Positions 1,544 to 39,577 of a DNA stretch of 39,577 nucleotides are shown here, piece by piece. The notes beneath the pieces were generated by a model. The model did not search any database. It was not told the origin of the DNA and saw only the letters and a program-made list of their open reading frames with translations. The position numbers and the translations under genes are program-made. The stretch is from the sequence record NC_010152.1. One strand, given 5' to 3'. The first letter of the stretch is position 1. Every line of letters begins with the position of its first letter.

Positions 1544-1966
1544 TTATTTCACCCTTGCTGTTTTGTAAGATTCTAGAAAATCTCTTGGGCTTTGCGTGTA
1601 AATTGTTCCGTCTTCAGTTTCAGTTATTATGTAGTTTCCTTCTTTTCGTATATTCGTGATTCTCTTTCCTTTGAAGAATAATTGATAACCTTCTTTCTGT
1701 AATTCACGCATTGCATTTATCATGTTTTCTACTTCGTTTTCGTTATCATTCGTTGTTTTTCTCTTTTCAACTATTATCTCTCTGTTCAAGAACTGTTCTT
1801 TCGTTAGTAGTAGCATTTCTCCATCCATGAATTCTACTATGACAATTCTGTTTTTCGTGTAGATTGATTTTACCCGTTCAACCCCATCTGCTCTTCTCAT
1901 TTTTACTTTTTTCCCACTTTTAATTAACGAATTGATTTGACCTATTTTTTCTTCCACGGGTTCCAT
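1544..1966 (-). CDS. Hypothetical protein with a tandem-duplicated domain (140 aa)
   Basis: IVIVEFMDGEMLLLTKEQFL versus YIITETEDGTIYTQSPRDFL. Confidence 0.75.
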   Translation of the reverse strand: MEPVEEKIGQINSLIKSGKKVKMRRADGVERVKSIYTKNRIVIVEFMDGEMLLLTKEQFLNREIIVEKRKTTNDNENEVENMINAMRELQKEGYQLFFKGKRITNIRKEGNYIITETEDGTIYTQSPRDFLESYKTARVK

Positions 1967-1997
1967 ATGAGCATATGGTTATTGGTGGTTAAAAAAA

Positions 1998-2240
1998 TTA
2001 TCCCTCTGCTTGTAGTATGTATTTCCCGCTTTTCGTTACGATTAGTTCTTTCACGGTGATGTTTATTCCCAGTGTTGATGTTGCCTCCTGGATTATCTTA
2101 TCCTCTATCTCTTTTAGCTCATCGATTTCTTTCAGTCTTTCTGACTTTGTCAAGTTGATTTTCGTTGTACCAAGTGCTTCGAAGATGTCTTGTATTGTCG
2201 ACACGTCGATCTCTCCTTCAATCCTTACCTTGATTTTCAT
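1998..2240 (-). CDS. Hypothetical protein (80 aa)
   Basis: Operon packing; GTGGGAG upstream. Confidence 0.7.
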   Translation of the reverse strand: MKIKVRIEGEIDVSTIQDIFEALGTTKINLTKSERLKEIDELKEIEDKIIQEATSTLGINITVKELIVTKSGKYILQAEG

Positions 2241-2508
2241 ACTCCCACATCAAGACAATTTTTCCTTCCATGGTTATTTTGCCTTTCTTGAATGTTACGA
2301 TGTTCGGCACTTTCTTTTTATAGAACGAGATGATGTCGTTTATGATTTCTTTCATTTCCTCGTTTTTGGTTATGTCTCTTCCTACTATTGTCGTTTCGTC
2401 GAAAGTTATTTCCTCTTTTCCTATTAGTTTTACAAGTGCTAGGAGGAATTTACCTTCTTTCGTCTTTTTTGCATCATCACTTGTTCCGATTATCACGTGT
2501 TTGATCAT
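2218..2508 (-). CDS. Hypothetical protein (96 aa)
   Basis: Directly after the Cas4-like stop; GGTGA SD. Confidence 0.7.
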   Translation of the reverse strand: MIKHVIIGTSDDAKKTKEGKFLLALVKLIGKEEITFDETTIVGRDITKNEEMKEIINDIISFYKKKVPNIVTFKKGKITMEGKIVLMWEYENQGKD

Positions 2509-2509
2509 G

Positions 2510-3121
2510 TTACTTCACCTTTGAGAATTGACACGACTTTCTCAACTCGCAATATTTGCATTCGTTGAATGGTGCTATAAGTGTTTTCGCCACGTACTTT
2601 TCTATTTGCCTTTTTATCCATTCATCGTCTACGTGGTACTGGGAGAAGAACGTTTGTCCCGTCTCGATTTCCGTCACTTTCCCGTCTTCTACTATGAACT
2701 CCCGCATTTCATTATTCCCCACGTATACGATTACTCCTTTTGTTGCGTTTACCATGTTCATGTAAATTAGTACTTGGAATATGTGCTCATCGTAGGGATG
2801 ATCTGGAGGTTTAGCTACCGTCTTGAATTCTATTACGATGTTGTCTTCTGTTAGTCCGTCTAGTCTTCCTATTAATGTGTAGTCTCCGTACTGTTTCCTC
2901 ACTTCTTTCTCAAATTCTATCTTCTTTTCTCCGTATGTTGTTAGCAATTTCTCTAGTCCCTCGTGTAATGCTACTCCTCTAATTATCGACGTTTCTGGTT
3001 CCTCTCTTTTTGGTCTCAGCACGCAATGTAAGAGATCTGTAACGTAAACTTCGCCTTCTTTCTTTGGTGAGTGTTCTTGTTGCATTTTCTTGAATGCTTT
3101 CCTAATTTCCTCTACTATCAT
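2510..3121 (-). CDS. Viral Cas4-like RecB-family exonuclease with Fe-S cysteines
   Basis: VTDLLHC, RGxxLH, GRLDG, EFKT, QVLIY and C-terminal [10 protein letters not shown] (1+3 Cys pattern). Confidence 0.9.
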
Positions 3122-4899
3122 CTACAGATCACCTCAACCATTTTTTCGCCTAGGACTGTTTTTGCTGTCTGCTTGTTCATGCATAATTCCGTCTTATTGC
3201 GTATTCCAGCTCTCATTAGCTGTACTGCTCTTTTTCTTCCAATGCCCGGTAATCTGACCAACGCTAAGGCTTCGCTTGGGACTCCATATCTGGTTTCTAG
3301 ATAGAGCATCTGTAGCTTCTTTGCTAGTTCTGTTCTGCCGAGTGCTTTTGATATTCTGTATACGCCGTATGTTTGCCATGCCAACGTTTCCACTAGTTTG
3401 TTCAAGTCGTGTAGTGACATTCCCTTCGTACTCTTGACGATGATTTTGTCGTCAACTCCTTTTATCCAGTTTTCAAAGATTGTTCTCACGTTTTCACCTT
3501 TTGATGCGTCTAGTACATTTCTGTTTTCTAGTATTGCATTCATGACGTCTTCTACAGACGTGTTGTCTCTGTCCAACACGTCTTTATACGCTATTGCGTC
3601 TCTGACGTCGAAATATGATTCAGCGACGGCTCTTCCGTAAGTTGTCGTATAGTATCCTGTGTTATCATGACCTAAAATGTTGGCTTCAACTAGTTTGTTT
3701 GCTGTCTCTATTATTTCGTCTTCGTCTAGGTCTTTGAAGGACAGCGTGAACTTTGCTACTCTCTTCAACTTATCCTCTTTCATATACACGTACTTGGATA
3801 CTGTTGCGAGTATGAAGTCTTCTAAAACGTGGTGTGGCGTTAGACTTCCATAGTTGACGTTGAAGTAACGTCTTGCCAATTTTTCAGCTTCTTTCATGTC
3901 AGTTGCTTCAATTACACAAAGTCCTTCTTCGTCATATCCGGGTCTTCCTGCTCTTCCGCAAATTTGGTCGAATTCGATTGGTGTTAGTGATCTCCACCCT
4001 AGAAATCTTCCGTACTCGATGATGGGGAGCTTTAGATCGTCAAATATGACTGCGTAGAATGGGAAGTTTACGCCTTGTCCTAATGCGGTTGTTGTTATAA
4101 TGATGTTATACTTTCCCTGCTTGGTTTCTTCTAGCAGTCTCAGTTTGGCGTCTGGTTCTAATCCTGCATGGAAGAACGCAACTCTCCCTCTGTATCTTCT
4201 ATCATAAATTAGGTAAAGTTCTTCTGCCTTTTTTCTGGTGCTTGTGAAGATCATTACGACCTTGCCTTTTCTTACAAGTTTCGTAACTATATCCTCTTTC
4301 ATTTCTATCTTGTCCCCATCCTCAAAAATTAGTGTTTTTCCTATTTTGATTGCCTTGTAAATGGGTATCGGTCTCTCGTCAGTTTTTAACACTTCGGCGT
4401 TCGTAACGTCAGCGATCTTATCCACGTCCGGAATAGTTGCGCTCATCATTATGAGCCGTATTTCCTCATTCATTGCATACGCCATAAGGTTCTCTATTGC
4501 TTTACCTCTCTCTTTATCACCAACGTTGTGTATTTCGTCTATGATAATCATATTCACGTTGTTTGTCCATCCGTAATGTCTTCTCAAGACTGCATCAGCC
4601 TTTTCATACGTTGTAAAGATGATCTTGGCGTCTATGTTCTCGGGATCTTCGTCGTAAACTTCGCTTGTTAGTGCGGTAGTTGGTGTTGTTGGGGAGATTT
4701 TCTTCTGGAAGTCGTCATTTAGCTGTAGAGCCAACGCTTTCAGAGGGACAGTGTAGAGTACTCTTCCGTTTGCTTCGCTTGACATTAGCATTGCTAGGAA
4801 TGATTTTCCTGTACCGGTGGGTGCTGAGATTAGTATGTTTTTACTCGTGTTGTGGAATACGTTGAGTACTTTTTGTTGGAATTCATTGAGCTTTACCAT
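3118..4899 (-). CDS. SF2 helicase, Ski2/Hel308(Hjm)-like (593 aa from ATG 4899)
   Basis: [32 protein letters not shown] and a C-terminal HhH (LPGIGRKRA). Second ATG chosen because it follows a GGTGA SD. Confidence 0.95.
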
Positions 4900-35609: not shown

Positions 35610-36029
35610 ATGGGATTCGTTCGCCACGACCCTAAAGAGTTAATATGGCAGAGTGACATCTCGTTCGCACTACATGCGTCGGACGACTTCCTAGTTGTAA
35701 ATGTAGCTAGAGAAATAGAAAACCCAAAAGCAAAAATATGGCTAAAGTATGACGACTTTGTACCGATCGACGCTGAAGACTTGCTAACAGTAGCTGAAAT
35801 AGCCAAGTCAAGATTTGAAAGAGAGCAAAAGACGCTTATACACTGTATAGCTGGAGTCCATCGTAGTGTAACATTCGCCCTAGCATCACTTATGTACGTG
35901 TATAACGTTAAAATAAAGGAAGCAATGAAAATGTTATGCCCACCATGCATTGACTTTAATACTTACGTGCACGAAATACCATATCATTTTTTATCCCTAG
36001 AGGAGTTTTATACTAGGTACATGAGGTGA
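35610..36029 (+). CDS. Dual-specificity/protein-tyrosine phosphatase (139 aa)
   Basis: TLIHCIAGVHRS (HCX5R P-loop) with an upstream DD general-acid candidate. Confidence 0.92.
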   Translation: MGFVRHDPKELIWQSDISFALHASDDFLVVNVAREIENPKAKIWLKYDDFVPIDAEDLLTVAEIAKSRFEREQKTLIHCIAGVHRSVTFALASLMYVYNVKIKEAMKMLCPPCIDFNTYVHEIPYHFLSLEEFYTRYMR

Positions 36030-37467: not shown

Positions 37468-37752
37468 ATGGTAAGCTTATTCCACTTCAAGAAAGAGATT
37501 AAAACACCCAGATCACTCTTCGTATCAACAAAAACAGAAATGCCACTAGTATTAATGGTAGCAATAGGAAAACATCATGCAGTAGGAATTGGAGAAGTTG
37601 GAGATAAATCAGCAACAGTAGAAAAATTCATACCACCATTCGGAGTGAAACCAACACCAGAAGAAATAGCAAAAGAATTACTGAAAAAACTAGATGTACC
37701 AAAAGACGAGTGGGAAACAATACTAGCAACAAGAAAAGAAATCACTTTTTGA
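37468..37752 (+). CDS. Hypothetical protein (94 aa)
   Basis: Divergent from ORF235; typical composition. Confidence 0.7.
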   Translation: MVSLFHFKKEIKTPRSLFVSTKTEMPLVLMVAIGKHHAVGIGEVGDKSATVEKFIPPFGVKPTPEEIAKELLKKLDVPKDEWETILATRKEITF

Positions 37753-38377
37753 GCTCTTTCGCCCTCGAGATAGAACACATTATCTCGAACATGTTCTCCC
37801 AGGATAATAAGTACTTGGGATTACCATGAAAAAGAAACACTGACTCGATGTCCTCGACGACAACCTCATTCCCATAGTACACCTTACCGTCTCTGACGAC
37901 GAACTTAGAAGGATAACGAGCCATAAGACAAGCAATGTGATACTTGTAAGGTGTAACATTAGGATCCAAAGTAATCGTAGCATAAACTGGTTCACAGTAA
38001 AAATATTCACCGTCGAGTTCGTACATTGCAACAGAATTGTCAAGAAGCTTAACAAAATCAGCACCCAACAAATAAAGAACTCTACATGGATAACCAACAG
38101 AATTCATTGCAAGCTTCTTTGCATTCTGCACCGACGTGAAACGTACTACTGGGAATGGAGAAAATAACGATATATCATGATAATCATAAACACAACCCTT
38201 CAGAACCTCCATAGCATATAATATGAGCTCATTACCAGATTTATTAGTCGCAAGATCAACCATTGCAACAAAATTATCTGGCAACGTCGACCCGTAATAA
38301 TATGTGAACCCCGAAGGAGTAATTATACCACCATAATATCTATCACGTGAAGCAAGAAGTACGGGAACAGTAGTCAT
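37742..38377 (-). CDS. Hypothetical protein (211 aa)
   Basis: ATGA overlap with the upstream ORF; GGAGG SD. Confidence 0.8.
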   Translation of the reverse strand: MTTVPVLLASRDRYYGGIITPSGFTYYYGSTLPDNFVAMVDLATNKSGNELILYAMEVLKGCVYDYHDISLFSPFPVVRFTSVQNAKKLAMNSVGYPCRVLYLLGADFVKLLDNSVAMYELDGEYFYCEPVYATITLDPNVTPYKYHIACLMARYPSKFVVRDGKVYYGNEVVVEDIESVFLFHGNPKYLLSWENMFEIMCSISRAKELKK

Positions 38378-39093
38378 ATTTTCGCCTCCAACTTCTTCCT
38401 CATATCCTTTATACGTTCCTCATTCATAACTTCACGATAAACTGGAACTACCATATCGAAAAGCTCTAGAAGATCTTTACCCTTTATCTTGTACTTAGTG
38501 TTGGCAACGGGGAATTTATAACAACGAACCTCCATTTCCCTCAAATATTTTACAGCACCATAATTATAAAGCTTACCGTTTACAATACCAGATAATTCTG
38601 ACCTAACTAGGAAATAATCATCTGGAGCACAATACTTGGGATCATATTTAGCAACGAGAATAACGGGTCTTGGTGCATCAATAGCAAAAAGAAGAGCGGA
38701 AGCGGAAAGATAAGACCAATAAGTTAAGTATGTATCCTTACCACCAACAAGATGAACAATACCATTACTAGTATAGAAACCATAGTTATTGTTCTCCACG
38801 TAATCTAAAGACGTACCACGATAAATTAAAGCACCTTGAAGAGAAATGGAATTCCACTCATTAACTAGGTCGTAAATCTCCTTAAATACATAACCATCAA
38901 ACTTAGGAGATGCAGAAGGATCATTAAGTAACAAATCGTGAAAAGTGTTATTCATTAAATTGACGATATCGGAGGGCAAAAGATAGTCAATACTGTAATA
39001 ATACGGGAGAAGGTGATATACTTTCTTCATGAAAGGTAACTTCATAATAACGTCAGCAACGACATCAGTAGGTAACATTATAGCCCAACTCAT
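38374..39093 (-). CDS. Putative ADP-ribosyltransferase, R-S-E clade (239 aa)
   Basis: IYRG (R92), YWSYLSASALLFA (S127), PVILV and REMEV (E186-x-E188). Confidence 0.7.
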   Translation of the reverse strand: MSWAIMLPTDVVADVIMKLPFMKKVYHLLPYYYSIDYLLPSDIVNLMNNTFHDLLLNDPSASPKFDGYVFKEIYDLVNEWNSISLQGALIYRGTSLDYVENNNYGFYTSNGIVHLVGGKDTYLTYWSYLSASALLFAIDAPRPVILVAKYDPKYCAPDDYFLVRSELSGIVNGKLYNYGAVKYLREMEVRCYKFPVANTKYKIKGKDLLELFDMVVPVYREVMNEERIKDMRKKLEAKI

Positions 39094-39265
39094 GTAGAAC
39101 CTCAGTTATTTTCTTGAAAGCGTACTCATAATCATGCCCAGTATACTCGTAAAACATTTCAATCATGAGATTTAGCACGTGATGATCAATAGTATAACCA
39201 TTGATGTAACGTGACAACTTAAGAGTTTCAATCATTTTCTCAACGAGTTCGAATTCATCAACCAT
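39065..39265 (-). CDS. Hypothetical protein (66 aa)
   Basis: First gene of the rightmost leftward operon; TTTTTAAG promoter-like box upstream. Confidence 0.65.
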   Translation of the reverse strand: MVDEFELVEKMIETLKLSRYINGYTIDHHVLNLMIEMFYEYTGHDYEYAFKKITEVLHELGYNVTY

Positions 39266-39369
39266 GTGTTAAATGAATGAAAAGGAGACTTAAAAACTTT
39301 GTCGAATAAATTGTAATAAAAATACAAAAGGTAGAACAAAAAATAAGATAGAGAGAGCAAATGATATAG

Positions 39370-39577
39370 GGCACGACGACACGAGATACGACGAGCAAAC
39401 GAGAGCAAAGACGAGGAACGAAAGACGAGAAACGAGAGACAAAGGAAAGGGAAACAATGACATAGGGTACTACGAACGAAAATACGACAAACGATAAACA
39501 AAAGAACGGGAAATGAGAACGAGAAACAATGACATAGAGTACTAACGAACGAGACGTGAAGAACGAGAAAATGAGAT
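39370..39577 (-). repeat. Right terminal repeat, inverted relative to the left end
   Basis: The reverse complement of 39484-39537 matches 315-368 with 4 mismatches in 54 nt. A second unit at 39449-39480 matches the CCTATGTCATTGTTT unit. Confidence 0.9.

Follow-up and report, generated by a model that had tools for sequence, protein, structure and literature searches.

The stretch of DNA analyzed here (the window, 39,577 bp) is a complete viral genome, that of Acidianus filamentous virus 6 (AFV6; Betalipothrixvirus pozzuoliense, AM087121/NC_010152), with 100% identity over the stretch compared. AFV6 is a betalipothrixvirus of the family Lipothrixviridae in the realm Adnaviria, and its host is Acidianus convivator. 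Beside a terminal repeat lie three overlapping minus-strand genes, gp66, gp65 and gp64. Our subject is the middle one, entered in GenBank/RefSeq as AFV6_gp65, 'hypothetical protein, ORF234'. An earlier note on this DNA had read it, from the letters alone, as a putative arginine-type ADP-ribosyltransferase (ART). On the evidence of family-wide conservation, structure prediction and comparison with known ARTs, we conclude that gp65 is probably a very divergent ART of the R-S-E (cholera-toxin-like) class, encoded in a three-gene operon with gp66 and gp64 as its probable partners.

The gp65 open reading frame (ORF) can be read from either of two ATG codons, and the database entry uses the second, at 39078. 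Comparison of the DNA upstream of the gene showed that this codon (beginning MLPT...) is kept in both AFV3 copies, AFV7, AFV8 and AFV9, whereas AFV3 and AFV9 have no ATG at the upstream position, 39093. Most likely, then, the functional protein is the 234-aa form, with its triad at R87/S122/E183. Residue numbers given below nonetheless follow the 239-aa reading (38374–39093); numbers in the 234-aa form are lower by 5. The reading frame and all the motifs quoted in the earlier note (YRG, WS-x5-A-x2-FA, PVILV and E-M-E-V) are present at the residue numbers it gave, as Y91-R92-G93, W126-S127-(YLSAS)-A133-(LL)-F136-A137, P143-V-I-L-V147 and E186-M-E188-V189. A loose R...S...ExE pattern is unremarkable when seen in a single sequence; it rises above chance here because of its invariance across the gp65 family.

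That family was assembled by several routes. A word-seeded search of 5.8 billion sequences returned 10 proteins, and an exhaustive hidden Markov model (HMM) search of 1.84 billion cluster representatives returned 13 profile matches, every one viral or metagenomic; none of the 13 formed a bridge from the gp65 family to known ARTs. Profile searching gained four further distant members, and SIFV, SIFV2 and one IMG/VR contig were added by tblastn or pattern scan. The pattern scan, made with a lipothrixvirus-only alignment, produced one new SIFV-like contig and found no cellular homolog in 185,579 GTDB species genomes. Two very long proteins among the 13 (3857 and 7059 aa) matched the gp65 profile weakly (E-values of 3e-6 and 3.5e-4), in multiple short stretches, and are probably repeat or composition artefacts. 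We consider it probable that the gp65 proteins constitute a new, highly divergent, virus-restricted family within the known ART superfamily.

Conservation was scored on an alignment of 19 homologs, whose minimum pairwise identity is 14.5%; smaller alignments agree with it. Exactly 8 of the 239 columns are invariant: R92, W126, S127, C155, Y160, E186, E188 and C191. Among them are all four residues that had been chosen beforehand, R92, S127, E186 and E188, each present in all 19 sequences; for four positions drawn at random the probability of this is ~5e-7. The earlier note had let its proposal depend on the conservation of R92, S127 and E188 in homologs, and on this point it is borne out. The ratio of nonsynonymous to synonymous substitution (dN/dS) for gp65 is 0.11–0.12 among the AFV3, AFV6 and AFV7 orthologs. 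Together, the invariant residues and the low dN/dS indicate that gp65 is a real gene, expressed as protein and under constraint, and that the residues singled out earlier are its most constrained.

An initial AlphaFold2 model, built from 10 close sequences, was mediocre, with a predicted local distance difference test score (pLDDT) of 76. It was superseded by a second model, built from 16 sequences that included the distant members, which reached a pLDDT of 92.2 and a predicted template modelling score (pTM) of 0.90, with five of five models above 91. The second model has three parts: an N-terminal bundle of five helices (~9–82), an ART-like beta core (89–203) and two C-terminal helices (206–238). 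Assigned by DSSP, the core runs through a strand at 89–95 that bears R92, a helix at 96–101, a strand at 123–127 that ends in S127, a helix at 130–138, strands at 143–149 and 155–162, a hairpin at 167–180, a helix at 181–186, a strand at 188–192 that starts with E188, and a last strand at 199–203. The canonical ART core is a split beta-sheet of order beta1-alpha-beta2-alpha-beta3-beta4-(loop)-beta5-beta6. Its R is on beta1; its S closes beta2, just ahead of a helix; and its catalytic E opens beta5, which the ARTT loop precedes. The predicted order of strands and helices in gp65 agrees with this, and R92, S127 and E188 fall on the strands where an ART would have them.

Two other residues invariant in all 19 sequences, C155 and C191, sit on adjacent predicted core strands (155–162 and 188–192) next to the putative catalytic glutamate. 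They may be a candidate stabilising structural disulfide; disulfides are common in proteins of hyperthermophilic crenarchaeal viruses.

Fold comparison by Foldseek returned mainly ARTs. Against the PDB, ART-superfamily folds made up 13 of the 14 top matches of the second model. These were led by the A subunits of cholera toxin (CT) and E. coli LT, at Foldseek probabilities of 0.92–0.93 and a root-mean-square deviation of 4.8–4.9 Å over 142–150 columns (E-value 0.035–0.13, template modelling (TM) score about 0.31–0.40). Arr (rank 2), the PARP1 ART domain, KptA and the pseudo-PARP of TASOR were the other top matches; ExoS, C3larvin, tankyrase, VahC and PltA ranked lower. The first model had already given 14 ARTs among its 15 top matches (C3 exoenzymes, Vis, VahC, C3larvin and Tpt1; TM ~0.2), and structures of Tre1 were among its weak matches. 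Over both models the top PDB matches span at least 6 ART families. In the BFVD library the strong matches were gp65 family members only, and among the weak ones ARTs and PARPs of phages and giant viruses were over-represented (RNA-polymerase ADP-ribosylase, PolyVal ART, VIP2-like ART and PARP-like proteins). We rate an ART-superfamily fold for gp65 as highly likely, because the resemblance recurs across models, libraries and many ART families and because the triad was placed independently of it.

On the predicted model, the closest structural relatives of gp65 are the CT and LT A1 subunits and the pertussis-like PltA, and by analogy its closest functional counterparts would be Alt, ModA and ModB of phage T4. 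With the toxins it shares a layout in which the first core strand bears R, the second ends in S and the fifth opens with ExE. It differs from them in showing no detectable sequence similarity, in the modest scores of the match, and in a middle motif of W-S where cholera-toxin-like ARTs have an S-T-S type. Unlike CT and LT, it comes from a virus of a hyperthermophilic archaeon, has a five-helix bundle and a C-terminal helical hairpin of its own, and is without secretion or B-subunit apparatus. T4 ModA/ModB (PF26816) and the Alt/VIP2 phage RNA-polymerase ADP-ribosylases are, like gp65, virus-encoded R-S-ExE proteins of ~200 aa. The R-to-S and S-to-E spacings are 35 and 61 residues in gp65 and 38 and 62 in the ModB family (R73, S111 and E171-x-E173, all invariant), and a local (L/I)YRG(I/T)S motif is similar in both. 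However, the T4 enzymes belong to the realm Duplodnaviria rather than Adnaviria and act in a different host domain, and T4 has no counterpart of the two dedicated gp65 partner genes.

Two further groups offer partial likenesses. C3-like exoenzymes and Vis/VahC were the top matches of the first model, near full length, each with helices at the N-terminus ahead of the ART core; these matches reached an E-value of 0.026 or worse at TM ~0.2 and were displaced by CT and LT once the better model was used. C3 enzymes also use QxE, directed at asparagine, whereas gp65 has ExE. The Tre1-Tri1 and DarT-DarG pairs resemble the gp65 module in coupling an ART-fold gene to small co-inherited neighbours. They are found in cellular defence or competition loci, whereas the gp65 module is in a virus genome, and unlike the partners in ART antitoxin pairs, gp64 and gp66 have no detected macrodomain, ARH or other ADP-ribose-removing domain.

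The organization of the AFV6 locus is summarized in Table 1. The co-oriented gp66 and gp65 overlap by 14 nt, and gp65 shares the 4 nt ATGA with gp64. A GGAGG motif precedes the gp64 start by 8 nt; gp64 appears to be translationally coupled to gp65. An A/T-rich TATA-like box, TTTTTAAG, is found 24–31 nt upstream of the gp66 ATG, a position that would suit an archaeal transcript with a short leader or none. On its 3' side gp64 is followed by a T-rich tract, where the convergent gene gp63 begins. The operon that the earlier note had drawn from these three genes thus holds up, in the overlaps, the TATA-like box, the T-rich tract and the retention of the module in relatives. All three genes are under purifying selection. 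Scans of gp64 and gp66 against Pfam, NCBIfam and PADLOC identified no recognisable domain. The label 'virion structural protein' that gp66 bears is also given to gp63, on the other flank of the module.

Table 1. Features of the gp66-gp65-gp64 locus in the AFV6 genome
Feature	Coordinates	Strand	Remarks
AFV6 gp66 (ORF66), first operon gene, small helical protein	39065..39265	(-)	Labelled 'virion structural protein' in RefSeq and PHROG 16569
AFV6 gp65 (ORF234), ART-like protein	38374..39078	(-)	234 aa, or 239 aa counted from the non-conserved ATG at 39093
AFV6 gp64 (ORF211), third operon gene, cysteine-rich	37742..38377	(-)	Most conserved gene of the cassette, dN/dS 0.04
Putative promoter of the gp66-gp65-gp64 operon	39266..39300	(-)	TATA-like TTTTTAAG, read by eye

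AFV7, AFV8 and AFV9 have the same cassette. In AFV3 (NC_010155, 36997–40068) two tandem copies of it adjoin the right inverted terminal repeat (ITR), ORF66-ORF234-ORF211 and ORF65b-ORF233-ORF207, so the three genes appear to have been duplicated there as a unit. The AFV3 paralogs share 60–69% identity and all evolve under purifying selection, and the triad is intact in both ART-like copies. A second arrangement was found in SIFV (2554–3997), SIFV2 and the IMG/VR contig, which have the small protein, then the ~200-aa protein, then the ART-like gene; relative to the AFV order of small protein, ART and partner, the two larger genes are permuted. We take the genes of the two arrangements to be the same, since gp66 matches SIFV0069 over its full length (hhalign Prob 80%, E-value 1.3e-5) and gp64 matches the SIFV0068 group over 164 columns (Prob 83%, E-value 8.4e-6). 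SIFV0068, the gp64 homolog, is accordingly located upstream of the ART-like gene (SIFV0067) in genomes of the SIFV type. The SIFV-like IMG/VR contig (3300027931; 45.7 kb), which is separate from the named isolates, carries its module at 1699–3145.

The four distant members (P0016, P0019, P0021 and P0022) are 249–286 aa long and 18–22% identical to gp65, with the triad intact. They come from virus-like hot-spring metagenome contigs of up to 46 kb (including JGI Ga0080003_1001016 and Ga0209120_1000046), which make up an undescribed group separate from the known lipothrixviruses. The contigs of this clade encode a family-B DNA polymerase (PolB), whose best match in the phage collection, at 25% identity, is in haloarchaeal tailed viruses; nearly all their remaining genes are ORFans. 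Here the ART-like gene is always preceded by a gene of 229–231 aa, with a 4-nt overlap, and a 63–68-aa gene is found just upstream of this pair on the opposite strand. The 68-aa protein is matched by gp66 (hhalign Prob 91%, E-value 9e-7) and itself hits PHROG 16569 at 1.7e-5. For the ~230-aa neighbour, comparison with gp64/SIFV0068 reached an hhalign Prob of ≤6%, as it did for the 246-aa neighbour on a short Logan contig (SRR29288675) with another distant gp65 member. Homologs of gp66 thus adjoin the ART-like gene in AFV3 (two copies), AFV8, AFV9, the SIFV type and the PolB-carrying clade. Because a gp66 homolog accompanies the ART-like gene even in this last clade, the association of the two appears either to predate the split of these virus groups or to have been transferred between them.

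Further features were noted around the module. A putative protein phosphatase gene, gp59 (35610–36029), lies ~2.3 kb from the AFV6 cassette, and the short Logan contig also encodes a dual-specificity phosphatase (PF00782; 86–493). A protein-modification gene neighbourhood, with a phosphatase near the ART-like gene, may be conserved. At its right end, between 39340 and 39577, the AFV6 genome repeats a ~25-nt motif (...aatgacataggg/tagagtact...acgaacga...) several times, as imperfect direct copies within a tract of C/T or G/A skew; this region overlaps the annotated ITR (39456–39577).

A number of observations weigh against assigning gp65 to the ARTs, among them the outcome of database searches. 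For none of 17 gp65 family members did Pfam give an ART family, even at E ≤ 10. NCBIfam and PADLOC searches with gp65 gave nothing meaningful, and searches of PDB sequences by phmmer and hmmsearch, made with the single protein and with two profiles, found no ART. In PHROGs the only match was to the protein's own family, phrog_11741, of 'unknown function'. Matches to UBE2O, MCM6 and CHASE2 in the library searches were dismissed as noise. For the T4 enzymes, with which the earlier note had compared gp65, we aligned ModA and ModB from NC_000866 with relatives from a large-database search (only 6, all PF26816) and compared profiles. The result was an hhalign Prob of 0.43% (E-value 0.14) over 18 columns at the YRG motif only, the sole local match pairing IYRGTS of the gp65 family with LYRGIS of ModB; global mode gave nothing, and single-sequence comparisons were negative too. 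These profile comparisons rule out membership of gp65 in the ModA/ModB family (PF26816), and the suggested kinship with T4 Alt/ModA/ModB or other ARTs found no sequence or profile link in Pfam, NCBIfam, PADLOC, the PDB or hhalign.

The structural comparison, which the earlier note had proposed as a check, stood in part: the ART-like fold appeared with two models and in two libraries, but no Foldseek match was obtained at E ≤ 1e-3 (best 0.026 and 0.035, with TM of 0.2–0.4, below 0.5). The alignment behind the model is also shallow, with few sequences and an effective number (Neff) of ~3.8. As for context, the 'virion structural' label of gp66 is a database label, and gp64–66 are absent from the predicted early-promoter anti-defence genes of AFV6, which comprise gp14, gp17, gp18 and others (PMC11065993).

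The last contrary observation is the AFV8 ortholog (ORF240, NC_010154, 668–1390), which has 10 short insertions relative to both AFV6 and AFV3. Nine of the 10 change the frame, and together they add 18 nt; no stop codon results and the reading frame stays open. The encoded protein diverges locally, with its S and ExE stretches scrambled. Sequencing error is a plausible cause, because all ten changes are insertions in one early-generation sequence. ORF240 may otherwise be a decaying copy; the insertions, if real, would mean that the function of gp65 is dispensable in AFV8.

Three other explanations were considered. The most probable of them accepts an ART-fold active site but gives it a task other than on protein arginine: modification of nucleic acid (a DNA base or a phosphate end), as by pierisin/Scabin-like, DarT-like and KptA/Tpt1-like enzymes, transfer of NAD-capped RNA, as by T4 ModB, modification of a small molecule, as by Arr, or plain NAD+ hydrolysis. 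Consistent with this, Arr (at rank 2) and KptA/Tpt1 (Foldseek probability 0.60–0.72) stand beside the protein-targeting toxins among the PDB matches, and one weak BFVD match is a putative RNA 2'-phosphotransferase. The viral DNA, moreover, is linear, with modified or covered ends, and the module adjoins its terminal repeat. ModB-type RNAylation, the transfer of NAD-capped RNA, exists in phage (PMC9503650). The active-site residues point the other way, and for that reason we think a substrate of this kind unlikely. The invariant R-S-ExE is the signature of the protein-modifying CT/C3/Alt-Mod branch, its ExE form being linked to arginine targets, whereas Arr, DarT and KptA use sites of the H-Y-E or H-H type.

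It is slightly less likely still that gp65 is unrelated to ARTs, an alpha/beta protein of superficial likeness whose eight invariant residues serve some other chemistry or the stability of the fold. Every Foldseek E-value is at least 0.026 and every TM at most 0.40, every sequence or profile test against known ARTs failed, and the alignment is shallow, all as this explanation would have it. It does not account for two differently built models and two libraries that bring up many distinct ART families and almost nothing else on top, or for triad residues, picked before any structure was available, that fall on the ART catalytic strands. Finally, we think it very improbable that gp65 is a catalytically inert ART-like scaffold, a structural or assembly part (e.g. 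of the terminal claw or filament) acting with gp66 and gp64: the structural labels of the flanking gp66 and gp63, the joint inheritance of the three genes, the pseudo-PARP TASOR among the fold matches and an AFV8 frame kept open despite scrambled S and ExE stretches would suit such a part, but a scaffold would have no need of an unvarying R, S, E and E in proteins that have diverged to 14.5% identity almost everywhere else, and gp65 itself bears no structural label in any record.

We therefore return to gp65 as a divergent R-S-E ART, which we hold, with moderate confidence, to be a catalytically active enzyme using NAD+. By analogy with the R-S-E clade, NAD+ would be held and oriented by R92, from the first core strand, and by S127, which closes the second. 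The catalytic glutamate would be E188, the first residue of the fifth strand, which follows a short helix and a loop placed as the ARTT loop is; this residue would stabilise an oxocarbenium-like transition state. E186, which completes the ExE, would give the enzyme a preference for arginine side chains in a target protein; we regard protein arginine as a possible, still somewhat doubtful, target. The products of gp66 (~65 aa) and gp64 (~200 aa) would probably act as partner, adaptor, regulator or inhibitor.

In phages, ART genes are often neighbours of morphogenesis genes, and their products are often packaged into virions (PMC9503650). On the most likely reading gp65 is a middle or late ART, possibly virion-associated or delivered with the virion, that would modify a host or viral macromolecule as many phage ARTs do. 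We favor this timing because of the virion-labelled neighbours gp66 and gp63 and the absence of the module from the predicted early anti-defence set; a role for gp65 as an early anti-defence gene is ranked lower because of that same absence (PMC11065993). The part in takeover or counter-defence that the earlier note suggested would follow by analogy. A fuller and more speculative picture, which we consider doubtful as a whole, is that gp66-gp65-gp64 constitutes a self-contained ADP-ribosylation system, specific to hyperthermophilic archaeal viruses. In it a thermostable R-S-E ART, perhaps braced by a disulfide between C155 and C191, would be directed or restrained by its partners, would be delivered with or assembled onto the virion, and would mark a host or viral macromolecule. 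In this picture the cassette, shared with the PolB-encoding group, would have been exchanged between unrelated archaeal viruses.

ARTs are annotated, though uncharacterised, in the haloarchaeal tailed viruses HVTV-1 and HCTV-5 (PMC8651126), so the statement in the earlier note that no characterised archaeal-virus ART is known needs that addition. It stands for lipothrixviruses: we found no report of an ART for Lipothrixviridae or any crenarchaeal virus in the searchable literature, and these filamentous viruses are absent from the main text of a virus-wide survey of NAD+-ADPr systems. To our knowledge, nearly all genes of crenarchaeal filamentous viruses are without functional assignment, and we know of no NAD+/ADP-ribose enzyme reported in the realm Adnaviria.

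ARTs are a familiar class of enzymes, and the placement of gp65 among them rests on predicted structure with borderline search statistics; what is distinctive is the dedicated three-gene context. If the assignment is right, structure and conservation analysis together would be shown to recover enzymes that all sequence libraries miss. The gp65 family would be the first NAD+/ADP-ribose enzyme in Adnaviria, and a compact, extremely divergent, thermostable ART would become available for structural comparison. A concrete function would be given to a three-gene module conserved in every betalipothrixvirus. ADP-ribosylation, whether post-translational or of nucleic acid, is a classic tool of phage takeover, and it would then also be used in the conflicts between archaeal viruses and their hosts at 75–90 °C. 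Should the module prove to be a self-contained ADP-ribosylation system, it would add a new regulatory layer to infection by Adnaviria.

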